From Salpingoeca rosetta (Eukaryota; Protista; Choanoflagellata): DNA of 29,752 bases. This document shows, one piece after another, positions 1 through 14,548 of the stretch (the stretch's first letter is position 1; each line of letters opens with the position of its first letter). The translations under genes and the position numbers were made by a program. The notes below the pieces were generated by a model that did no database searches, was not told where the DNA came from, and worked only from the letters and a program-made list of their open reading frames with translations. Location of the stretch: NCBI GenBank assembly GCA_033442325.1, contig JAWQFM010000004.1, positions 1,071,208-1,100,959 of the forward strand. The letters are read 5' to 3'.

Positions 1-795
1 GTTGTTGATGTGTGGGAGGGGAGGTGTTCAGGCGTTTTGGGGAGGAGTTGCGCTGATGTCACGCTCTGTTGAACTTGTGGAAGGGGGGGAATGCGCTGGT
101 TGTTTCACTGTGTGTGCGGCTTCTTGGTGGGTAGCAAGCTGGCAAGGAGGACTGTGAAGTCAAACCAGGCGGAAGTAGGGAGTGCTGGAGTGCTAAAGTG
201 GAACCACTACACGGTGGGCGTGGCGTGGGCGTGGCGAGCGCGGCAAGGCACCCAGGCAAGCAAGGCAAGGCAAGTGATGAAGGGAGAACAAAGGAGAGAA
301 GGAGGAGCGAGGAAGGAGCGAGGTGAGGTGGCACGTCAAACAACAACAAGCAAACAAAATGCACGCGCTGCACTGCATTTTGGCGAGAAAGAAGGAGGCG
401 TGGCGTGAAAGAATTGAGCGTGCATGCCACGCACAGCAGGAGGAACGTTGCGCAGCCAAGCTACGCTACACAGCAGCGATTGTGGCGTGTGTGTGTGTGT
501 GTGTGCGTGAAACCTTGAAACACGAAAGGAGGCGGTCATTTGGCATTCAACTCAAAGGCTGAAAGAAGCGGGGGGGATACAAGACAGCAAGAACAACAAC
601 CGCAACAACAACAACTTACAACATAAACAACGTCATTGAAATCATGAGTACATAGTAATTGTCAGCCCAACAAAACAAACAGCTTGGGGCACATGAATCA
701 CGCTCAAGACGACACATGGCATGGGAACAGAAAAACAAGGGAAGGAAGGACGGGACAGCCAACGTTGACCAACAGGAGGAGGGTGTGGTTTTGGA

Positions 796-2118
796 TTAAC
801 AGCCAGGATCGATGACGAGCACACCATCAGCGGTGGCTGGAATGGCGTAGATGAGACCGTTTTGAGCGAGGACGCCACCCCACCACTTGTTGGAGCCTGA
901 AAGCCCACTAATGCTGGTTGTGTCGGTGGTGTTGGTGGTGGGATCGTAGTTGAGGACGGAAGACGAGTCGTGCGGGATGCCAATGATGTTGCCGTTTGGT
1001 GCGAGCACGCCTCCGACCCACTTGTTCGAACCCGTCGCCTCAGCAACGCTGAATGTGGTGGCACTGTCCGTGGTTGGGTCTATGACCAGTGTCGTCGCAG
1101 ATCGAGCTGGCACGGCGTAGATGTGGCCGTTGCGTGCCAAGACGCCTCCCCGCCATTTGTACAGGCTCGTGTCGAGATTGTGAATCGTGGTGTCCTCCGT
1201 CGTGAGAGACACTGGATCGATGACAAGGACTGAGGTTGCCTTGTATGGGATGCAGTAGATGAGGCCGTTTGCTGCTTGAATGCCGCCGTACCACTTATGG
1301 GTAGCAGAGGAGAGGCCTGATAGGGTGGTGGTGTCGGCGGTGTTGGTGGCGGCGTCGATGAGCAGCACAGAGGTGGCGTAAAACGGAACGCCGAAGATGC
1401 GGCCGTTGTCTGCCACCACACCACTAAACCACTTGCCCGTTCCCACACCGAGGGACTGAATGGTTGTGGTATCGGCGGTGTTGGTATCGGGATCGACGAT
1501 GAGCATGGTTTCTCTGTGTGATGGAAACATGTAGACGAGACCGGTGTGCGCCAGCACCGCATCGGACCATTTGTCACTGTCGATGCCCAGCTCGGAGATG
1601 GTGGTTGTGTCGGCGGTGTTGGTGCTTGGATCAATGATAAGCACAGACTCTGAGCTGAAAGGTGCAGCGTAGATTAGGCCGTTGTTCGCCAGCACCCCGC
1701 CAGCCCATTTGAAGACGAGAGTGCCAAAATCGTCGAAGGTGAATGAGCTTGCGCTGCACGCCTCGGCTCGAAGGGCGTCGATTCGTCCCTGCTGAGCGGT
1801 GATCGTGTCCTGCTGTATGGCAATCATGCTCTGCTGCGCCTGCACGTTTTGCTGGTACACCTGCAACATGCTCTGCTGTGCAGCCACTGTCTCAAAGAGC
1901 GCATCCACGTTCATCCCGTTCACAAACACGGGCTGGCTCGCTGGATCGCTCGTGTTGATGTGAAACGCACCTGCATCATCCTCCACCAGCGTCACCTCTC
2001 CAGCAACGCTGCTTATGAACGGCATCCAGCACACTGCCGCCGCCACCAGCAGCAGCGCGGGGAGCAGCACCAACCCACCTGCCTGCAGGCACCCCATCGT
2101 TCTCATCGGTGCCATCAT
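796..2118 (-). CDS. Secreted 7-bladed beta-propeller repeat protein with signal peptide and Gln-rich coiled-coil stalk (copy 1, ~440 aa)
   Basis: Intronless ORF. The start was moved to MMAPMRT (ATG at 2118) because the paralog at 14548 starts at the same motif. Hydrophobic signal (GLVLLPALLLVAAAVCWMPFISSVAG), heptad-like Q-rich segment, then seven ~46-aa repeats KWxGGVLAxNGxIYxxPxxxxSVLxIDPxTNTxDTT ending DPGC-stop. Confidence 0.88.
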   Translation of the reverse strand: MMAPMRTMGCLQAGGLVLLPALLLVAAAVCWMPFISSVAGEVTLVEDDAGAFHINTSDPASQPVFVNGMNVDALFETVAAQQSMLQVYQQNVQAQQSMIAIQQDTITAQQGRIDALRAEACSASSFTFDDFGTLVFKWAGGVLANNGLIYAAPFSSESVLIIDPSTNTADTTTISELGIDSDKWSDAVLAHTGLVYMFPSHRETMLIVDPDTNTADTTTIQSLGVGTGKWFSGVVADNGRIFGVPFYATSVLLIDAATNTADTTTLSGLSSATHKWYGGIQAANGLIYCIPYKATSVLVIDPVSLTTEDTTIHNLDTSLYKWRGGVLARNGHIYAVPARSATTLVIDPTTDSATTFSVAEATGSNKWVGGVLAPNGNIIGIPHDSSSVLNYDPTTNTTDTTSISGLSGSNKWWGGVLAQNGLIYAIPATADGVLVIDPGC

Positions 2119-2682
2119 ACTCCAAGTGGGTGAAGAAGAAGAGAGGAGAGGAGAAGAGGAGGAGAGAAGAGAAGTAGAAGGTAAGTGTGCCTTCCAGTCC
2201 TTCCTCGTTCGTGTGTCTGTTCGCAGGACAGGTGCAGCACCAAGAGAAGACAAAAGAAGACCAGATTGGTTGTTGTTGTTTGTGGCGTTTTTTTGGACGA
2301 TTGTTGGGAATCGTGCATTGGATTTCCAGCCACACACAAGCAAGTTCACTGCTGTTGTGTTTGTTGTGTTGTTGTGGAAAGGAGCACGTTGAAACGCATC
2401 TATCTATCCATCCATCCAGCCATCCTTGCCTTCATCAGCTCGTGACTGGACCTACAAGGACAGAGCACACACAGCACACAGCTTCATCACGCAGTGCAGA
2501 AGAAGGGCGTGAGTTGAACACATGTGAAGGAGGCAGCCATCGTGACTGAAGAATACACTGTTCATCCAAAGGTGCGTGTGTGTGAGTGTGTGTGAGGTCA
2601 TTCCATTACATTGCATTGCATTGCATTGCTCAGCCTTGTGTGCTCAACACACGTAAGCGCATACGCACACATACATCACACA
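796..2682. repeat. Dispersed direct duplication, copy 1 (propeller gene plus ~560 bp upstream)
   Basis: Aligns colinearly with 13271-~15213, including non-coding blocks (tgtctgttcgcaggacagg, gacgattgttgggaatcgtgcattggatttccagc, catcgtgactgaagaat, TTGCA repeats). Similarity ends at cacacatacatcacaca. Confidence 0.9.
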
Positions 2683-2721
2683 CACACTCACTCGCCTGCA
2701 ACGCTTCCTTCCTCGTCTCAG

Positions 2722-3822
2722 ATCCGTGCAGCGTTGCAAGGCTGATGAATCGTACATGCTGTGCACCGTCAAAGCCCCCATTGCCGCCTACCTCACTTTC
2801 GACGACGTTGTCTGCATCGCCAAGGAGCAAAAGGTGTGTGTGTGTGTGTCTGTAAGAAGCGTACCACTGCTGTGATCTACAACGCTCGTCATCACCTACA
2901 TCCACCCTCATGCCCATGCACACACGCATCCCATTTGTGTTTTCAGGTGGTTGAGATTGCCCCTGCCCCGCACCTGCCCTCCGATGTGCGCCAACAGCTC
3001 TGCCAGGTTTGCCTCATGTGCATGTGCGTGTGTGTGTCTGTGCTTGTGCTGTCCTTGTGCTGCGGTCACAACAGACGCACCTCACCTGTGATCGTCACTC
3101 AGCCCCTGTTCCTCTCCTCCCTCTCGCGTCTGCCGCTTCCCCTCTCCTCCCTCTCACGTCATTGCTCTCCTGCGTTCAGGACGCTGTAGCCATTGGCCGC
3201 TCCCCTCAACCACCTACCANNNNNNNNNNNNNNNNNNNNNNNNNNNNNNNNNNNNNNNNNNNNNNNNNNNNNNNNNNNNNNNNNNNNNNNNNNNNNNNNN
3301 NNNNNNNNNNNNNNNNNNNTGTAGCAGTGTGGTGTTGGGGTGTTGGGGGTGGAGATATGGTGTTGTGGTGCGTGCATGCACTGTTTTGGTGTTGACAAAC
3401 GTAATCGCACCTGCCCCAACACTCACACCAACCATCCAACGTGCGCAATGTGGTGCAGTCACTACTTCAAGGAGGTGAATCTGCGCATTCAAGTCGCGGA
3501 GATGGTGAGCTGTGGTGGTTCGGTGAAGCAGCACTGTTGATGGTGCTTTGTCCACTTTGATGTTTGTGGCGTACTGTTCTGCTTCATTCCTCCCCCACCT
3601 CACTTACACTTCCTCCATCATCTCCTTCCTCTCCTTCTCCCTCCTTTATTCTTCCCACCAGGTGACTGGCGTTGACCTTGTGCAATCGCAGCTGATGCTT
3701 GCTGGCGGCGCGACGCTGTAAGATGATTGAGTTCGAACAGGACGCAATTGCCACCTGCGGATTCAGCATCCAGGTGCGCATCACCACGAAGGACCCGCTC
3801 AACGACTTTGCCCCCGATACAG
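2722..3822 (+). pseudogene. PC: Pyruvate carboxylase (biotin carboxylase domain) exon fragments, degenerate
   Basis: Exons with AG/GT boundaries translate to RCKADESYML...APIAAYLTFDDVVCIAKE (2722-2833), VVEIAPAPHLPSDVRQQLCQ (2948-3007), DAVAIG (3180-, 3' end lost near the gap), HYFKEVNLRIQVAEM (3459-3504), and VTGVDLVQSQLMLAGGATL/frameshift/FSIQVRITTKDPLNDFAPDTG (3662-3822). These match the PC motifs KADEAY, VVEIAPA, HYFIEVNxRxQVEH, GVDLV and RITTEDP..F.PDTG. Stop, frameshift and missing segments are present. Confidence 0.85.
3220..3319. other. Assembly gap (100 N)
   Basis: Run of N; true length unknown. Confidence 0.99.
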
Positions 3823-4732
3823 GTGCACATGCGCTTGCGTGCGTGTGTTGGATTGAAGGATGGGAGAGAGAGCGGATTTAGAGAAGCTCATGTTTCCTCT
3901 TGGAACGCGGGCACCAGTGGCCGGTGTAAAGTCCAAAAGGCACGATTCTTCTCCTTCTCAACACTTCTTACCCCTCGTAACCCATCATCACCCACGACCA
4001 TGCGCAGCGGAACGAGCCATTCACCCAGCCGCGAACTGGAGCCATACACAACAGCAGCACCACCACCGGCACATGGCGACGAGAAGGATGAGGGAGAGGT
4101 TGATGAGGCGGCACTTGGGCCGTTTGACGTGCTTGTGCACCACACGGGCATGCTTGAGCTGGTGCGCGCGCTCCTTGGGAAGCAGCAGGGCGTCATCAGC
4201 ATCACACCACTGGACGAGCATCAGGGGCAGGTTGCCCGCGTCAGGTGAGCTGCTGCTGACTGGTTGGAGGTGTGCGGTAATGTTGGGGGATTGTAACCGG
4301 TTGAGGAGGTGTTCGTTGCATGCGAGGATCATGATGGGAATGACGACATGTGGTGGCGGGTAATGGCGCGAGGATGCGGCAGTCAAGTACTCATCATGTT
4401 TGTGTGCAGTTCCTCTCTTCATCCCGCACCGATACACCCTCAACTCACTCAAACACACACACACACACATGTGCAGTTGCGCGACGCGTGACGTTGGCGA
4501 GCGCGTCCTGAGGGAGGTGACGAACTTCCCTATTGGGCAGGTGCAGCTGACGGCCCGCCGCGATCCGGACTGCCCCGCTTGGACGGCGGACGAGCTGTGG
4601 TCCGTGTGGGTTGAGCCCGTGTCCGAGGGTATTGAAGAGGTGCTGCCCTCGCTCGCCAAAGCAAACGGCGGCTTTCACTCACACACGTACAAGCCGCACG
4701 GTAACCGCGTCAGGGGCACATTCAGGTCGGCG

Positions 4733-4733
<1 letters not shown>

Positions 4734-4806
<73 letters not shown>

Positions 4807-4819
4807 GTGTGTGCGTGTG
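4734..4819. repeat. (GT)n microsatellite in intron
   Basis: Pure GT run just after the splice donor at 4726. Confidence 0.97.
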
Positions 4820-5942
4820 CATGCGTGTATGTGCGTTGTGTGTATACGTACGTGCACAGATGCTCCTGCAACTCCATTCTGCAACTTAATTCTGCGTAAG
4901 CACGCGTGTCCTTCCCTCAACCACGTCCTCAACCAACCAACCAAACCAACCCCCCCCCCCTTGCAACAGGTTTGTGTCACGGGAAAGCGCCGAGCTGATG
5001 GTCCGCCTGTACGACCAGCGAGAGGTGCTGGGCACGAAGCTCAACGTGTTCCCAGACCCAAAGGCAAAGAACTGAAAGAGCAAAGGGCAAGGACTCCACA
5101 TCCTCCTCCCCTGCCTCGCCAACATCCATCACGCCGACGCCTGTTGCGGCCAGGCAAAGTGCATCACATTCTGCCTGAGCGAGGCAGCCAGGCAGCGTGA
5201 CGTCAAAAGGCCTGACTGCCGCCATGCCCTGGCCCACCGACACGTACCGCAGCGTGCAGGCGACGCTGGAGCGCGCAGGCGTCAACGTCCAGTCGCTGCA
5301 AGTCTTCCCGGACCTGTGCTCTGCAAGCGTTGACGTGGTTGCCGACAGCGAGGAGACGTTCCGAAGCTTGCTGCCACTGCCCATTGACACGGCGGCGAGC
5401 GCCTGTCGTCTGGAGGCGCGCCACGCACCGCTGCACCGCATTGTCGTCACGTGCACCTTGCACAGCAAGCCCACCTCGGGCCGCGACATTGTGCAGGCGG
5501 TTGAGATGAACTTTGGTGGCAAGGCGAAGCTTGTGCCCATCCCACAGTCCCTCAAGGACACGCTGTCCCGCATCCATCCGTTTGCCAGCACACGCATAAC
5601 TGAACAAGAACAAGAACAAGGAGCACAGCAGCAGGATGGTGGAGGTGGCAGTGAGGCACATGATGTTATTGCCAAGCCCACGGCTGTGCACGACCCTCAT
5701 TAGTACTAGAAAGACGGCGATGGTGACAGCAAAAGCAGCAAGAGCAGCGGCGCGTCCTCTGAGACCACACTGCAGCGCGTGTTTGTGCTGGAGACAACGG
5801 ACACGCGTGCGGCGCATGCGTGTGTGCGCAGGATGCAGTTTGCCACCTCTGTCTCCTGTGCTACCCGAACGACGTGCACGTGGCAGTGCTCGACCCCAAG
5901 CTGGGCGGCCTCCTGTCGGACCTCGTCGACGCATTCAACAAG

Positions 5943-8811
5943 GGCAGCGTGGCCAAGGACCTTGATGTGCTGGCGGCTGTAACCATGGGCAACCGCATCT
6001 GCTTCACGGGCAGCACTGCCGTGCCGGTGTGGTCGCAGGCCAAGCTGCTTGCAGGCTTCCTCGCGCCCGCCTTCCACTCGTTTGCCCGCAGCGACCGCGT
6101 GCTGGGCGACGACAAGATCATGGAGCACGTACTGAACGACTACGGCCTCAAGCTCGGGCGCTACCCGACGCCTGGCCTGCTGCCCTACGCAGGCACGGCA
6201 CACGGGGCCGTGCGGGATGTGTGGAGTTTGAGCGGCTGCCGCCCGTCACCGACACCCCGTCCATCGCATCGCCCGTGGCACCCCAGCAGGCGCTTATACA
6301 CACGTGCGACCTGGACGGCGGGGCGCCATGCTGCTGGAGTACTCGCTGTACTACTACCTGGACCAGGACAGGGAGCGCGGGCTCAGCTACATCAACAGCA
6401 CCATCGGTGCCAACATTAAGTCGCAGACGACGATCAGCGTCACGGGCATGCAATACCGCTTCCTGGACTCGCAGCTGCTTGAGCTGGCTCGCAAGTTCCG
6501 CGTGTATGTGCGCAAGCCCAGCGCGGAGGACAGGGACGCGTGCGCCTCGAGCGTGCCCGTGACCGTGGAGGGCATGCAGCGGCAGCTGACGGCATTTAAC
6601 AACGCGGTGTGGGACACGCTCAAGGAGTACCTGTGCCACGTGCTCGGGCTGCCGGTCATTGACACGTCGCACGTGCCGGAGATGTCCGAGGCGGACGTCA
6701 CCTTCCTGAAGCGCAAGCTGTTCAATTACCTGACCAAGGCCAGCCGCACGCTGTGCCGCAGCAAGGACAGCGTGGTGAGCTATGTTGCGCCACAGGACGT
6801 GATTGGCACGCCCTCTGAGCGCAACGTGTGGATGGCTGGCCGCCGAGATCTAATGCAAACGGTCATCCCAACGATGGAGTCGACGTTCCGCACCATTGCC
6901 CACATCCGGCCCACGCGCCACGTGTGCCAGGTGCCCATGTCCGTGACCAAGGAGCTGAAGCGTCTGCGCAAGAAGGCGTTGGTGCTGATGCCAGTTATAC
7001 CGCAAGCACGGGCGCTCCTTCGGCAACTGCAAATGCTTCTGCTGCCACTGCTGCTGGCGACGATGGTGTTGGCTTGAGTGAGCAAGCCGCGCACACAGGA
7101 ATGGGATCACAACAGCGAGCGCAGGGCGTGTATGACTCTGGCAGGGGCGACAGCCTGTCGATCTCGGTACCCACGCAGTGCTCGAAGGACTGCGCAAGGA
7201 GATGGCGGCGGCGTCGGAGGTGCTGCTGCCGACCACGTGCGAGAGGCTGTTCCCGGCCAAGGTGAAGCAGGCCGTGTGGGAGGTGGAGCTGTACCAGTAC
7301 CACGCCATCGGCGAGTCGCTGCCCGCGGTGCAGCTGCATGCGAAGCTGAATAATACGACAGCGGCAGCGTGCCAAGGACCCTTGATGTGCTGGCGGCTGT
7401 AACCATGGGCACCCGCATCTGCTTCACGGGCAGCACTGCCGTGCCGGTGTGGTCGCAGGCCAAGCTGCTTGCAGGCTTCCTCGCGCCCGCCTTCCACTCG
7501 TTTGCCCGCAGCGACCGCGTGCTGGGCGACGACAAGATCATGGAGCACGTACTGAACGACTACGGCCTCAAGCTCGGGCGCTACCCGACGCCTGGCCTGC
7601 TGCCCTACGCAGGCACGGCACACGGGGCCGTGCGGGATGTGTGGAGTTTGAGCGGCTGCCGCCCGTCACCGACACCCCGTCCATCGCATCGCCCGTGGCA
7701 CCCCAGCAGGCGCTTATACACACGTGCGACCTGGACGGCGGGGCGCCATGCTGCTGGAGTACTCGCTGTACTACTACCTGGACCAGGACAGGGAGCGCGG
7801 GCTCAGCTACATCAACAGCACCATCGGTGCCAACATTAAGTCGCAGACGACGATCAGCGTCACGGGCATGCAATACCGCTTCCTGGACTCGCAGCTGCTT
7901 GAGCTGGCTCGCAAGTTCCGCGTGTATGTGCGCAAGCCCAGCGCGGAGGACAGGGACGCGTGCGCCTCGAGCGTGCCCGTGACCGTGGAGGGCATGCAGC
8001 GGCAGCTGACGGCATTTAACAACGCGGTGTGGGACACGCTCAAGGAGTACCTGTGCCACGTGCTCGGCTTGGCCGGTCATTGACATGTCACACGTACTGG
8101 AGATGACCGAGTCGGACGTCACCTTCCTGAAGCGCAAGCTGTTCAACTACCTGACCAAGACCAGCCGCACGCTATGCCGCAGCAAGGACGGGATGGTGAG
8201 CTATGTTGCGCCGCAGGACGTGATTGGCTGGCACGCCCTCTGAGCGCAACGTGTGGATGGATGGTGGCTGGCCGGCGCGATGTAATGCAGACGGTCATCC
8301 CGACGACGGAGTCGACGTTCCACACCATCGCCCACATCCAGCCCACGCGCTGCGTGTGCCGGGTGCTGGTGTCCGTGACCAAGGAACTGGTTGCTGGACA
8401 GCAAGCTGAAGCGGCTGCGCAAGAAGGCGTTGGTGCTGATGCCGGTTATACCGCAAGCACGGGCGCTGCTTCGGCAACTGCAAATGCTTCTGCTGCCACT
8501 GCTTCTTCTGCTTCTTCTGCTGCCGGCGGCGATGGGGTTGGCTTGAGTGAGCGGACCGCGCACACAGGAGTGACATCACAACAGCGAGCGCAGGGCACGT
8601 ACGACTCTGGCAGGGGCGACAGCCCGTCGACCTCAGTGCCCACGCAGTGCTTGAAGGACCGCGCAAGGCCATGGCGGCGGCGTCAGAGGTGGTGCTGCTG
8701 ACCACGTGCAAGAGGCTGTTCCCGGCCAAGGTGAAGCAGGCCGTGTGGGAGGTGGAGCCATACCAGTACCACACCATCAGCGAGACGCTGCCCGCTGTGC
8801 AGCTGCACGCG
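5943..8811. repeat. Tandem duplication A (5943-7342 and 7363-8811, offset 1420)
   Basis: 5961-6645 is almost identical to 7381-8066 (I saw one substitution, aaccgc vs acccgc). The 3' halves still align but carry many substitutions and indels. Confidence 0.95.
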
Positions 8812-9255
8812 GAGATTCGCGAGGGAAGCATCAACAACGACCGCGACATGAACGCCGAGAGGAGCGGCCCCCTTGCGGTACAACGAGGCGCGCGTGCCCA
8901 CGTCCGGTGCGCTGGCCCTCTCGTCCAACATTGAGCACGTGCTGCATATGGTTGCGCCAAACTTTGCACCCGAGTTTGGCAACACGGTGACGCAGACGGC
9001 TGCGGACCTGACGACGGCGTACCGCGCGCTGCTGACGACGACGCGGGACAACAACATTCGCTCGCTCGCCACGTGCGCGCTCGGCTGCGGCGCTTTCCGC
9101 TGCTCCCCATACGCGTCTGCATGCGCGCGCTGTTTGAGGTGATTGACGAGGTGGACCGCGACGGCACGTTCGTTCTTCGACACCATCCGCGTGACCATCA
9201 TCACCAAGGACGTGAGCATGCTGTCGGCGTTTAAGCAGCTGTTTGAGAAGTACCA
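8798..9255 (+). other. Macrodomain remnant
   Basis: LHAEIREGSI (GDI-like start), then GPL/RYNEARVPTSGAL...IEHVLHMVAP...LTTAYRALL...NNIRSLATCALGCGAFRCSP...FDTIRVTII. This matches the macro consensus VIHAVGP, LxxAY and SIAFPAIxTGxF. The NAAN/GGG segment is absent and there is a frameshift near 8872. Confidence 0.8.
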
Positions 9256-9347
9256 TGGCGAGAAGGTGGGCAGCGGGCTGTATGAAGAGGACCTGCAGCG
9301 CAGCGCCCTTGATGCGCCGGCCGATGAGACGCCAGCTGACCCCATCC

Positions 9348-10070
9348 AAAGTGGCTGTACACGGGGCCAACGTACACGGAGCCGCCCTCCAAGGCGGAGC
9401 TGGACAACAAGGCGGCGTGGAACGGGTTTACGCACGACGCGACGCTGCTGATTGAAAACGCCTTCAACAAGCACTGGGCTGCCATCGCTGCCAAGCGCAA
9501 GCGCAGTAATGCTGACAACGATGATGATGATGATGGCAATGGTGGTGGTGATGGTGATGATGATGATGTTGGCAATGGTGAGAGTGATGATGGCAGTGAT
9601 GGCCAGAGCGGCAGCATCGGTCAGCACAAAGGTGTCGCTGCTGGCGGCGTTGCTGTGGAGCATGCGCGTGAGATGCCCAAGGAGATGACAAAGCCGTGCG
9701 GGCGCTTCCCCGACAAGTACCTGCACAAGGAGCACTCCAAAATGAGTGAGGAAGAGGACGCCCACGCGGTCGCCCATGCCCGTGCAACCGCGGCTGCGGA
9801 GGATGAGCGCAACATGCGCCGGACGGTTGATCCAGATGTCCTGCAGTGGTGGCTGGAATACAAGAACCGCAAGGCGTGGAAGTCGGCAAGCTTCTTCAAG
9901 TTCAAGATCCAGTACACGACCAACACCCCCGGCAAGCTGGTTGACCGCTACTTCACGGTGGCCTTCCAGGACCACTGGGTGTACGTGAGTTGAGCACGTG
10001 GGCATGCACGTGAACGACCTACGCCTGAGAGTGAGCGCGTGCGGCGGGTGGTGGACGAGCAGCGGTCGAA
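9348..10070 (+). other. WWE-like domain split by a long acidic/low-complexity insertion
   Basis: KWLYTGP...AAWNGFTHDATLLIENAFNK (W, W, E pattern), followed later by DRYFTVAFQDHWVY...ERVRRV (YxIDF...RxVRR-like). Confidence 0.55.
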
Positions 10071-10089
10071 GCTGGAGCCACAAGCCCTC

Positions 10090-10863
10090 TTTGAGTTTCC
10101 TGACGGCTGGCACATGCGCGGGGGCCAGTTGCTTGTTGACGTGACCAGCGAGGACGAGCTGGGCCACGTGCGTGCGCCCCCTGTTGGAGCCGCTTCGCCC
10201 ACGAAACCTGCGCGTGCAGCGTGTGCAGAACGTGCCGCTGTTCAAGCGGTACTTGGAGAGCGTGCACCGCGTGTACTGGCGCCCGCGCCACCAAGCCTGT
10301 CCAACGACATTGCGCCGCTCTCTGGCAACGACAACGACGACTGCAACGTGCTTGTGCAACGTCTGCTGCACGTCATCTGCAGGAGCGAGCTTGGCCTGAC
10401 CATCAACTACGCCAGCGCGGAGGGCTACTTTGTCTCGGGCCTGTACTTCAGCCGCGACCCGTCGTTTGCTGTCAAGTGTGGCCACCACAAGGGCAGCGCA
10501 ACAGACAAGAACGACACCGCCAGCGAGCGGCGCGTGTTGCTGCTGCTGGCCCGCGCGCGTATGTCGATGTATCGACGCCCCAGCCGAGTGACATTGCTGT
10601 TGCTGCTGCTGATCATGATGTCGCTGCAACTGCTGTTTCTGCTGCTGCTGCTCGCCATGTTGCTGACGAAGGAGAAGGAAGCGGTCGAGCTGCCGCTGGT
10701 GAAGGGACCTCGGGTGGTGCTGAGAGTCCTGGTGGACGCATGACTGCTTTTGCTGCTGCTGGGAGCGTGTTATACGATGTCGTTTGCGGTTTCGACGGCG
10801 ATACGGAGATGTTTGTCATCTACGACAACGGCATGTGCTACCCAGAGTACATCATCTCCTTTG
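10090..10863 (+). other. PARP/ART catalytic domain remnant, copy 1
   Basis: FPDGWHM, RVQRVQNVPLFKRY, RLLH-VIC, GYFVSGLYFSRD, VLLLLARA, LYDVVCG..TEMFVIYDNGMCYPEYIISF. These are the characteristic motifs of PARP7/10/12/14/15-like ART domains, spread across frameshifts. Confidence 0.88.
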
Positions 10864-12377
10864 ACGATGATGCTGTTGATGTGCAGGGGGAAGTGGACGG
10901 GGACGAATCAGAGGATGCGGAAGAAGAAGTAGTCGCGCCAGTTGTCGGGGAAGGGGAGAGACGATGACCGTGGAAATGACCCTACTGCGAACGTGGCAGA
11001 TGCTGGAGCGAGGGGCATGCGACTCACGACTGGGGATGAGGATGGTGGTGATGGTGATGGTGATGGTGACGGTGATGGTCCGCCACGTGAAGATGGCGAT
11101 CAATCACAACGACCTTCACCACCCCAAAAACAATGTTCCCGGTGATGGTGCTGTTGCTGAGAATAACGGCTACGGGGCGTACGGAATCAGAGGTAGCCCC
11201 CACCCCAACAACAGCCCCAACATTAACAACAACAACCACAACATTCTTGGCAATGCCAGCTGGGACATGCGCGAGGCCCAGTTGCTTGTTGATGTGACCA
11301 ACGAAGACGAGCCGAGCCGCTTGCGTGCGCGCCCTCTGGGAGCCGCTTCGCCCCCGAAACCTGCGCGTGCAGCGTGCGCACAACGCACCGCCGTTCAAGC
11401 GGTACTTGGAGAGCGTGCACCACGAGTACTGAAGGCCCGCGCCACCAAACCTGTCCAACGTCATTGCGCCGCTCTCTGGCGACGACTACAACGTGTTTGT
11501 GCATCGCCTGCTGCACGTCATCTGCAAGAGCGAGCTTGGCCTGACCATCAACGACGCCAGCGCGGAGGGCTACTTTGGCTCGGGCCTGTACTTCAGCCGC
11601 GACCTGTCGTTTGCTGTCAAGTATGGCCACCACGAGGGCAGCGCAGCAGACAAGAACGACACCACCAGCGAGCGGCGCGTGTATGTCGATGTGTCGACGC
11701 CCCAGTCGAATGTAGTTGCTGATCATGGTGCTGATGATGATGTCGTTGCAACTGCTGTTGCTGCTGCTCGCCATGGTGGTGACGAAGGAGAAGGAAGTGG
11801 CCGAGTTGCTGCTGGTGAAGGGACCTCGGGTGGTGCTGAGGGTGCTGGTGGACGCACGACTGCTTCTGCTGTTGATGGGAGCGTGTTGTACGATTCCGTT
11901 TGCGGTTTCGACGGCGATACGGAGATGTTTGTCATCTACGACAACGGCATGTGCTACCCAGAGTACATCATCTCCTTTGACGATGATGCTGTTGATGTGC
12001 AGGGGGAAGTGGACGGGGACGAATCAGAGGATGCGGAAGAAGAAGTAGTCGCGCCAGTTGTCGGGGAAGGGGAGAGACGATGACCGTGGAAATGACCCTA
12101 CTGCGAACGTGGCAGATGCTGGAGCGAGGGGCATGCGACTCACGACTGGGGATGAGGATGGTGGTGATGGTGATGGTGATGGTGACGGTGATGGTCCGCC
12201 ACGTGAAGATGGCGATCAATCACAACGACCTTCACCACCCCAAAAACAATGTTCCCGGTGATGGTGCTGTTGCTGAGAATAACGGCTACGGGGCGTACGG
12301 AATCAGAGGTAGCCCCCACCCCAACAACAGCCCCAACATTAACAACAACAACCACAACATTCTTGGCAATGCCAGCT
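10106..12377. repeat. Tandem duplication B (10106-11260 and 11259-12377)
   Basis: 10782-11260 reads as identical to 11898-12376 (offset 1116). The 5' parts are diverged. Short gct microhomology at the junction. Confidence 0.95.
11261..11979 (+). other. PARP/ART catalytic domain remnant, copy 2
   Basis: HRLLHVICKSELGL..GYFGSGLYFSRDLSFAVKYG...LYDSVCGFDGDTEMFVIYDNGMCYPEYIISF (ORF 11493-12083). The LLLLAR strand is deleted relative to copy 1. Confidence 0.85.
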
Positions 12378-13270
12378 AACTTATCTGTCTCAGCCTTGGC
12401 TAGAGTCAGGTCGCTGCTGGTGCCTTCTTGAAGGACTTAGCCAGGCTAGTGACAGTTGGGTTGGTTTGGTACGCCAGTTTGGTTGTCTTGTGTTATCGAG
12501 GGTTGCGGAGTGGTTTGTTTCGTAGCAGGTGTTGTTTGAAGTGGGTGGTGTTGGCCAGTTGGCCTGTTTTGTGCTTGTTCTTCTTCCCTCCCCCTTCTCT
12601 CCTGTGTCTTTGGTGGTTGTTGTGCAAGACTGCACAACGCCGTTTGTCATTCACATATTCCTTGGAGCAAACCAAGCTCACGTTTGGTGTGTGTGTGTGT
12701 GTGTATTTGATCCTTGAACCATCTGAACTTTTCTTCTTTGTCGTGTCTTGTGCGAGTGGACACTTGCTCGCACTCCGCACACTCGCTCTTGATTGAGTGC
12801 GCGTTGCTAACAAGCTTAACCGTGGTAATTGTTGTGAACGGAAATGAAATACACGTGTGTATGAACGGGGCAATGAAAGTCGAGTGCGTGGGTGGAAGAG
12901 AGGATGTGTGTGTGCGGTTGCACACGCGTTGAACCCCATGCTGATGTCACGTGGATGGAAATGCATTGGCTTGCGGGCTGACGACTCTCGAAGAAGTGTG
13001 ATTGCCTTGTTATACTGGAAGTGTTGCCTCTACGCCAGCATGAACACTACGCGTTCCACAGTCTTGGAACAGCTTCTCGCGCCATCGCAATGCATGCACT
13101 CGGTTGAGGGTTGAGGGTGGGTCATTTCAATTCGAAATAAAAGCACAATGAGCAGCATCAGGTGCACAGGACGCAGTAACAGCGGTGACGAAAACGAAAA
13201 AGGTGCAGAAAGGGCACACAAGTGTTCGCACGCACACACACACACACACACAGACACACGCGCGCAACAA

Positions 13271-14548
13271 TCAGCACCCCGGGTCAATGACAAGTATGTT
13301 CTCAGCATCAAATGGAATGCCGTAGATGAGGCCGTTTGGAGCAAGCACCCCGTCCCACCACTTGAAGGATCCAACAAGGCCAGTAACGGCGGTCGTGTCG
13401 GTGGTGTTTGTGGTTGGATCGAAGATGAGCACGGAAGGCGAGTCAAATGGGAATCCAACGACGTTGCCGTTGGGTGCGAGCACGCCGCCAACCCACTTTG
13501 AAGTGCCACTTGCACCTGCCACAAAATGCTCGTCGGTGGCGTTAGTGGATGGATTGATGACGAGCGTGGTTGCAGCTTCGCCTGGGATGGTGTAGATGAG
13601 GCCATTGTGTGCAAGCACGCCATCATACCACTTGAAATTTGTGCCAAGGCCACTGATGGTGGTGACGTCCATCGCCAACGTCTCTGGATTGATGATGAGG
13701 ACGGAGGAAGCCCTCACGGGAATGCAGTAGATGAGCCCGTTGTCGGGATGCACGCCACCGTACCACTTATACCCCTGACTCGACAGCCCGGACAGCGTGG
13801 TGATGTCGGCTGTGTTGGTCTCTGGGTCGATGATCAGCACAGACGTGGCAAAGTAAGGGATGCCGAAGATGAGGCCATTGTAGGCGACCACGCCACTGCG
13901 CCACTTATTGCTCGTGGATCCAAGTGAGTGGATACTTGTGGTGTCAACCGTGTTGGTGTCTGGGTCAATGATGAGCATCGTCTCCCGGTTTGAAGGGAAC
14001 ATGTAGATGAGGCCGTTGTGTGCCAACACAGCGCCAGCCCATTTTCCACCACCCACAGGGAATCCCGAGATTGTGGACGTGTCGACGGTGTTCGTGTTAG
14101 GATTGATGATGAGCACGGAGGAAGGATATAACGGCGCAGCGTAGATCAGCCCATTGTTCGCCACCACTCCCCCAAGCCACCTGTTTCCTGCTGACTCCAG
14201 CTGCCCAAATGTGCTGGCGCTCGGCTCCACCAGACGACACAAGCGATGATGCTGCAGAGCGTTGGTGTTCTGCTGTGCATTGATCGTGCTCTGCTGCGCC
14301 GACACAGTGCTCATCAGCGTGCTGAGTGCCTCGTGCACATTCATCCCGTTCACAAACACGGGTTGGCTCATTGGATCGCTTGTGTTGATGTGAAACGCGC
14401 CCGCATCATCCTCCGCCATCGTCACCTCTCCAACAACGCTGCTGATGAGCGGCATAAAGCACACTGCAACCGCCACCAGCAGCACGGGGAGCAGCAGCAT
14501 CAGTCCACGTGCCTGCAGGCATCCCGTCGTTCTCATCGGTGCCATCAT
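13271..14548 (-). CDS. Secreted 7-bladed beta-propeller repeat protein with signal peptide and shorter coiled-coil (copy 2, 425 aa)
   Basis: Intact intronless ORF. Same MMAPMRT start, signal peptide, [24 protein letters not shown] motif, seven KWxGGVLAxNG repeats and terminal DPGC as copy 1. Confidence 0.9.

Follow-up and report, generated by a model that had tools for sequence, protein, structure and literature searches.

A probable duplicated pseudogene of a PARP14-like mono-ADP-ribosyltransferase family in the choanoflagellate Salpingoeca rosetta

PARP14-like proteins and the Salpingoeca rosetta locus

A "PARP14-like" macro-PARP ancestor has been placed early in Unikonts and its genes were often duplicated nearby, with the clade 3 proteins of choanoflagellates and amoebozoans carrying macro, RRM, WWE and PARP domains (Perina et al. 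2014, PMC4245714). Human PARP14 was described in 2023 as holding three RRMs and eight KH domains, one of which is split by the macrodomains (PMC10450202). Here we analyse 29,752 nucleotides of Salpingoeca rosetta DNA (GenBank assembly GCA_033442325.1, contig JAWQFM010000004.1, positions 1,071,208 to 1,100,959, forward strand), hereafter the window, which belongs to scaffold GL832960.1 (2.08 Mb). The plus strand at 3984-12379 carries what is very probably a partial duplicate, no longer working, of a large gene for a PARP14-like mono-ADP-ribosyltransferase, and this copy probably makes no protein. An initial annotation, made from the letters alone, had proposed a decayed RRM-KH-macro-WWE-ADP-ribosyltransferase (ART) architecture here and reasoned from the possibility of a choanoflagellate host, which S. 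rosetta is. The window has a eukaryotic composition (GC 52-65%, with (GT)n microsatellites) and a single 100-N gap at 3220-3319.

The closest described protein is vertebrate PARP14 (ARTD8/BAL2), which also has a WWE domain and an ART with an H-Y-L triad. The S. rosetta family resembles it in N-terminal RRM-like units, at least one and probably several type I KH units, a MacroD-type macrodomain and a C-terminal PARP-fold ART with a His/Tyr/hydrophobic triad, the hydrophobic residue being Leu, as in PARP14, in a Tara Oceans homologue and Met in the window. It differs in having one macrodomain instead of three, no detectable WWE, an extra domain between the WWE-like part and the ART, and an ART with a low-complexity insert of about 150 residues that is too diverged for phmmer against solved PARPs; the window copy, moreover, appears to be dead. 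Frequent local duplication is a further likeness to the PARP14-like genes of the 2014 survey. With the clade 3 proteins of choanoflagellates, sponges and Amoebozoa the family shares lineage, the listed macro and PARP domains, RRM-like and WWE-like counterparts of the other two, and repeated nearby duplicates, whereas that survey is earlier than the recognition of the KH domains and contains neither this pseudogene family nor its fusion to pyruvate carboxylase (PMC4245714).

Lesions and missing blocks relative to the paralogue

The architecture stands in no single open reading frame (ORF) and emerges only across frames of the plus strand, as first proposed; the longest plus-strand ORF in 4000-12379 has 281 codons (6232-7074). 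An exhaustive HMMER search with this 281-residue frame as query matched six proteins among 1.8 billion representatives, four of them S. rosetta models on GL832960.1 (PTSG_11910, PTSG_11904, PTSG_02841 and PTSG_02929), and further searching added PTSG_02793 and PTSG_02668 (2791 residues, with a variant of 2108 residues). A word-index protein search with the same frame, or with the whole Tara protein described below, returned only the query itself, the tool being limited by its length window and by high divergence.

PTSG_02668 (model P0013, at locus L004) is the closest assembled relative of the window copy, and its residues 800-2614 lie in one 5.46-kb exon (L004 13494-18956). Blastn aligns window 3984-6291 to L004 12575-14830 at 86% identity, followed by 6318-6957 at 95%, 6965-7345 at 76% and 8857-10020 at 91%. 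Within the aligned blocks we counted about 18 indels of lengths not divisible by three, and at 5073 a TGG codon has become TGA. The window lacks four blocks of the paralogue (about 804, 383, 249 and 415 nt) and with them several KH-region domains, the N-terminal third of the macrodomain and a pre-ART domain. The stitched segments had been taken for exons, and this holds ahead of 4970, where the only two real introns left in the copy are found (4245-4478 and 4726-4969); from 4970 on, however, the paralogue has a single exon, so the frame changes in that part do not mark exon boundaries and are lesions. In the manner of duplicated pseudogenes, the copy combines frame-breaking lesions against its paralogue, retained introns and lesions common to several copies, which bears out the proposal of decay.

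Alternatively, this could be a working gene whose frames are joined into a full protein by unusual splicing, many short introns or programmed frameshifting. Two genuine introns are indeed kept, the 281-codon frame at 6232-7074 is open, and the annotated models PTSG_11910 (mapping to window 5224-8240) and PTSG_11904 cover part of the region. However, these models use wrong frames (e.g., KRLRKKALVLMPVIPQ), one exon of PTSG_02668 and one ORF of the Tara contig span the homologous region, and the frame changes coincide with indels of 1-19 nt against the paralogue's exon. Over 6400-12399 the RNA showed no joints with GT..AG ends, and both the macrodomain N-terminus and eight residues beside the catalytic His are missing. 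We consider a working gene very unlikely. The GTGAGT at 9984 was rejected as a 5' splice site, as the paralogue reads straight through (VSPRKEH) where the window has an 8-nt deletion.

The features of the copy and its upstream fusion partner are as follows.

2756-3830, plus strand: decayed fragment of a pyruvate-carboxylase-type ATP-grasp domain (CPSase_L_D2), found by tblastn of models P0002, P0004 and P0012 and by PF02786 in those models; it has an in-frame stop between VTGVDLVQSQLMLAGGATL and KMIEFEQDAIATCGFSIQVRITTKDP and encloses the N gap
3984-4244, plus strand: homology to PTSG_02668 starts here by blastn, near residue 624 of its 2791; RRM-like unit a, first half
4245-4478, plus strand: retained intron with GT..AG ends and correct phase, the upstream exon ending at the 5' splice site GTGAGC; placed by the exon boundaries of PTSG_02668 on L004
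4479-4725, plus strand: exon that completes RRM-like unit a and encodes the first half of unit b
4726-4969, plus strand: retained intron, correct phase, with a (GT)n microsatellite
4970-6291, plus strand: start of the paralogue's single exon, where RRM-like unit b ends and domains of unknown fold follow; nonsense TGA at 5073-5075 (TGG in the paralogue) and frameshifting indels at 5082, 5148, 5205, 5855 and 6218
6292-6317, plus strand: junction of deletion 1, with about 804 nt lost (about 268 codons; L004 14831-15634)
6412-6648, plus strand: type I KH unit a (VTGMQYRFLD...VTVEGMQRQL), open here; called from an AlphaFold (AF2) model, VIA-align, Foldseek and the atlas
6650-6957, plus strand: KH-like unit b, then KH-like unit c as far as its first strand and helix, where deletion 2 truncates it
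6958-7345, plus strand: junction of deletion 2 (about 383 nt, L004 16278-16660), low-complexity linker and pre-macrodomain segment
7178, plus strand: 19-nt frameshifting deletion
7363-8814, plus strand: tandem duplicate A2 of 5943-7345 (A1), 92% identical by self-comparison, with its junction out of frame; four frameshifting insertions beyond those of A1, at 8071, 8225, 8254-8258 and 8385-8388
8815-8856, plus strand: junction of deletion 3, with about 249 nt (L004 17028-17276) lost, including the N-terminal part of the macrodomain (IVNSANPDLMNDGGV...)
8857-9260, plus strand: macrodomain remnant (PF01661), C-terminal two thirds, with frameshifts at 8873 (+1), 9122 (+2) and 9167 (+4)
9349 and 9992, plus strand: 1-nt deletion and 8-nt deletion, the latter followed by a stop
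9400-9989, plus strand: WWE-like region, a conserved block interrupted by an acidic low-complexity insert, recognized at motif level only
9990-10035, plus strand: stop and junction of deletion 4, with about 415 nt lost that encode an extra domain between the WWE-like part and the ART
10036-11258, plus strand: ART copy 1 with acidic tail (LLH-VI, GLYFS, TEMFVIYD), with frameshifts near 10280 and at 10536-10560 and a stop at 10965
11259-12379, plus strand: ART copy 2 (PF00644), the tandem duplicate B2 of 10106-11261 (91% identical), with the original stop TAA at 12377-12379
11431-11433, plus strand: TGA stop in ART copy 2

A different explanation takes the real locus to be intact and attributes the frameshifts and tandem repeats to errors of sequencing or assembly in repetitive DNA. 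The family is multi-copy and difficult to assemble, an N gap lies at 3220-3319, and A1 and A2 share 97-100% identity over their first 700 nt. DNA contigs of two other runs (X1 and X16) nonetheless match the window with zero differences over 9932-10061, 10053-10178, 10448-10644, 10858-11027, 11347-11534, 11780-11905 and 12115-12340, the first of these spanning the 8-nt deletion at 9992 and several of the others lying in the ART. In X1 the window's extra base at 8873 accounts for about 225 of 316 depth units and coexists with the paralogue's form. The tandem copies differ by 8-9%, each with indels of its own, and the same deletions recur in five loci. These zero-difference contigs cross none of the four large deletion junctions and no tandem-duplication junction, so the large deletions and tandem duplications rest on being shared with other copies. 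The loose end of an X1 contig after 8856 has an exact match in L004. An artefact of this kind appears highly improbable.

RNA evidence was drawn from two raw runs chosen by species label and compared with window 6400-12399. Reads at least 99% alike to the window made up 18 of 485 in one run and 35 of 961 in the other, the remaining 96% of reads being only 95-99% alike, and at nearly every diagnostic site all RNA reads had a letter other than the window's. The extra base at 8873 was absent from every read covering it (11/11 and 15/15). Reads also keep the C missing at 9348, run on as VSPRKEH after 9989, give LLHGTRSTPP before 10368, and continue as VYW-AKHRR-PAPPSL after 10276, where the window is broken. 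Because the RNA reads lack these lesions, an expressed relative is intact exactly at the window's breaks, ART included, and the window copy itself is likely silent. Several loose RNA ends match PTSG_02668 with zero or one mismatch.

Several observations nonetheless weigh against reading the window copy as a silent, dead duplicate of such a parent. Part of the region stands in the NCBI annotation as the protein-coding gene PTSG_11910. The RNA alleles agree with PTSG_02668 at only 26 of 39 sites and agree fully with none of the six loci. No ART was found within 10 kb downstream in L004, and PTSG_02668 is not the complete parent. All six loci lack the ART-specific RNA strings, and the intact ART-bearing locus, marked by LLHGTRSTPP and VYWAKHRRPAPPSL, was not located among them. 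The RNA source could be a paralogue beyond these loci or a divergent strain under the same species label; if it is a divergent strain, silence of the window copy in the reference strain no longer follows. PTSG_02668 as the transcribed parent was rejected on the 26 of 39 agreement and its ART-less locus. The prediction that an intact parent should exist elsewhere in the genome holds in part: a better-preserved gene lies on the same scaffold and RNA attests an intact expressed version, but the assembled gene lacks the ART.

At 6646, 6691, 6693 and other sites, the letters in all RNA reads are absent from the six assembled copies and from the X1 and X16 contigs there, which suggests that the RNA runs, dated 2026, sampled an unassembled paralogue or a divergent strain. 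The 3' end of PTSG_02668 (L004 18820-20468) runs from ...GHTPEIQ into (GT)n and (CT)n repeats, with two near-identical RRM-containing exons at L004 19195-19488 and 19899-20198, each followed by (GT)n, and no ART. Either the 3' part of the gene has truly been replaced or the assembly is wrong at this point. Its neighbour at L004 22558-30468 encodes a large LRR-Roc-COR protein with a faint TIR match, innate-immunity-like in character.

Domain content and the Tara Oceans homologue

The sole relative outside S. rosetta among the 1.8 billion representatives is an uninterrupted ORF of 2494 residues (P0005) at 176-7660 of the Tara Oceans contig TARA_SAMEA2622875_METAG-scaffold_7236 (L001), 38% identical to the 281-residue query. 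This ORF and the window are collinear from the KH-like part through the macro and WWE-like parts to the ART. The contig, from a marine eukaryote, has a GC content of 62.5% and a (GT)n run at either end, and its end cuts off the N-terminus within a (GT)n intron at the same place as the S. rosetta intron 4726-4969. A giant-virus origin of this intronless ORF was rejected as unsupported, given the GC content, the flanking (GT)n runs and the break at the shared (GT)n intron.

Collinearity also bears on whether the copy is a chance mosaic, in which RRM/KH-like and macro-WWE-ART parts from different parents were joined by rearrangement. The 5' end is a mosaic, since it includes the pyruvate-carboxylase fragment, and the assembled PTSG_02668 lacks an ART. 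However, window 3984-10020, from the RRM-like to the WWE-like part, follows one S. rosetta gene, PTSG_02668; the KH, macro, WWE-like and ART parts follow one uninterrupted Tara ORF; and the ART stands in the same position in all five copies on the scaffold. The initial annotation had named different parent genes for the two halves as grounds for abandoning its reading, and the halves do not part in this way. We give a chance mosaic very little credence.

The macrodomain and ART calls, both made from the letters alone at first, are firm. Pfam PF01661 matches 8852-9139 (E 7.9e-10, 39 bits against a cut-off of 22) over profile positions 45-115 of 118 only, a partial match in which the N-terminal third is deleted, whereas the whole macrodomain of PTSG_02668 scores E 3e-22. 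The nearest solved structures to the latter are human PARP14 macrodomain 1 (E 2e-12) and then PARP9 macrodomain 1 (2e-9), and by sequence comparison the domain appears related to the PARP14/PARP9 macrodomains. The architecture contains one macrodomain, not three. A strand-helix segment (RVTIITEDVSTLSAFKQTFEKY) after the macrodomain is only suggestive of a macrodomain set within a split KH domain.

For the ART, Pfam PF00644 matches 11433-12080 (E 5.7e-7, 29.7 bits against a gathering cut-off of 26.7), and more weakly P0002, P0012 and the Tara protein. As a PARP fold the call is firm. The C-terminal strands align to human PARP12, ZAP and PARP15, with the Met of TEMFVIYD opposite the Ile of PARP12 PSIFVIF at the third triad position. 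The triad is H-Y-hydrophobic, of the mono-ART type, and not H-Y-E, with Met in the window and Leu in the Tara protein, whose motifs are LLHGT, GLYFS and NELFVLYD. Eight residues after the catalytic His are missing from the window, which has LLH-VI where the Tara protein has LLHGTRMVPPEQV. A reading of "LSGN" as a replacement of the HGT motif was rejected, as the Tara alignment shows the His kept (LLH-VI) and eight residues missing. Similarity to solved PARPs is weak and its ranking mixed: the C-terminal part is nearest PARP12/ZAP/PARP15, and the N-terminal family profile points weakly to PARP4 and tankyrase (E 0.3-0.9). A phmmer search of the Tara ART against the PDB gave no match.

KH folds were assessed on the paralogue's equivalent part. 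A single-sequence AlphaFold model of the window's own 281-residue frame reached a predicted local distance difference test (pLDDT) of 39, and P0013 residues 1490-1870 were modelled instead by AlphaFold (AF2) from a 7-row alignment (mean pLDDT 51.5, 60-81 in two units). For KH unit a (window 6412-6648, repeated at 7832-8068; model residues 54-135, pLDDT 60-78), the 19 top matches of 48,161 chains were all type I KH domains (Z 10.6-8.3), led by MEX-3C KH2 (Z 10.6, root-mean-square deviation (rmsd) 2.3 A, 70/84 residues) and including hnRNP K KH3 (Z 8.6, rmsd 2.1 A). The top rows of this VIA-align comparison of the predicted structure have rmsd values of 2.1-2.7 A over about 70 residues, and Foldseek and an atlas shape search likewise return KH proteins. 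KH-like unit c of the paralogue reaches Z 7-8 to SF1 and vigilin KH4, mixed with other beta-alpha-beta-beta-alpha folds; unit b has low pLDDT and an unclear fold in the model. The model supports at least one type I KH unit, and there are probably several, which agrees with the earlier recognition of KH-like units.

The remaining two calls fared less well. The RRM-like segment at 4000-5070 carries an RNP1-like motif (RGTFRFVSR), and atlas features measured on the paralogue's equivalent part lie nearest RRM clusters at 0.89 (recognition 2828), but Pfam finds no match in the window's segment. The sole Pfam RRM_1 match (23.2 bits against 20.7) is to P0013 residues 391-459, an N-terminal part absent from the window copy. 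The WWE call found no support in Pfam at E up to 10, in phmmer against the PDB, in a family profile against the PDB or in the atlas; the likeness is at motif level only (W-x-x-F-x-x-D-A-T-L-L-I-E-N-A-F ... Y-F-T-V-D-F) and is interrupted by an insert of about 150 residues. The extra domain lost from the window by deletion 4 is present in both the paralogue and the Tara protein. The claimed PARP14 domain order stands for the RRM-like, KH, macro and ART parts, in that order; the WWE is unsupported, and the number of macrodomains differs from that of PARP14.

Copies on the scaffold and the history of the family

At least five such copies lie on GL832960.1, each fused to a pyruvate-carboxylase fragment. 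Loci L005-L008, which hold the other copies, have a common layout of an opposite-strand gene of about 420 residues, then the pyruvate-carboxylase-type ATP-grasp fragment, then the PARP14-like fragment. Models P0002, P0003, P0004 and P0012 and these loci have in common the pyruvate-carboxylase fusion, deletions and the LLH(G/V)-IC gap, an 8-residue gap after the ART His that is present in all S. rosetta duplicates. Deletion 1 is common to copy A2 and models PTSG_11904 and PTSG_02793. Because the copies share layout, gap and deletion, an already damaged founder seems to have spread by segmental duplication. Identities among copies form a mosaic of 84%-95%, with the window sometimes closest to PTSG_02668, a pattern that suggests gene conversion. 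Because the pyruvate-carboxylase fragment is fused in at least four other copies, automatic annotation has named these models "ATP-grasp / carbamoyl-phosphate synthase domain-containing".

Genes flanking the copy at window 838-2682 and 13271-14548 (minus strand) are 71% identical in DNA and have NGLIY-type repeats. Opposite-strand genes about 420 residues long flank every copy and seem to belong to the repeated unit. Next to the PTSG_02793 copy, L006 1-3211 holds the pol gene of a retrotransposon, with integrase and chromodomain.

The following history may account for the window copy. A copy starting about 624 codons into a PTSG_02668-type gene would have become fused to a dead pyruvate-carboxylase fragment. 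This founder would first have lost four internal blocks and the eight codons beside the catalytic His, and segmental duplication would then have carried it to at least five places on GL832960.1. The window copy would later have gained tandem duplications of 1.42 kb and 1.15 kb and many small indels. Judged from domain homology, an intact family member would bind RNA or protein partners through its RRM and KH units, bind or remove ADP-ribose through its MacroD-type macrodomain, and add single ADP-ribose units through its H-Y-(L/M) ART.

The window feature is an ordinary duplicated pseudogene, and it is the parent gene family that is of moderate interest. PTSG_11910, and probably PTSG_11904, PTSG_02793, PTSG_02841 and PTSG_02929, are pseudogene fragments in wrong frames, and surveys of gene families should leave them out when counting choanoflagellate PARPs or ATP-grasp proteins. 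That the full architecture predates animals, as the initial annotation proposed, is not new, PARP14-like choanoflagellate proteins having been published in 2014 (PMC4245714); what is added here is the pseudogene family and the presence of KH units in a choanoflagellate member. Given the expressed S. rosetta gene and the Tara homologue, the chances seem to us evenly balanced that one protein of the choanoflagellate-animal ancestor already united RRMs and an array of several KH units with a macrodomain of PARP14/PARP9 type and an H-Y-L mono-ART. The KH RNA-sensing arm would then be ancestral, not something gained in animals or vertebrates, with an immune-gene-like turnover by local duplication and decay. 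In the parent family a protein from outside the animals joins KH units to a PARP14-like macrodomain and an H-Y-L ART, which would date the RNA-binding part of the PARP14 design to a time before animals and place it in a tractable unicellular model.

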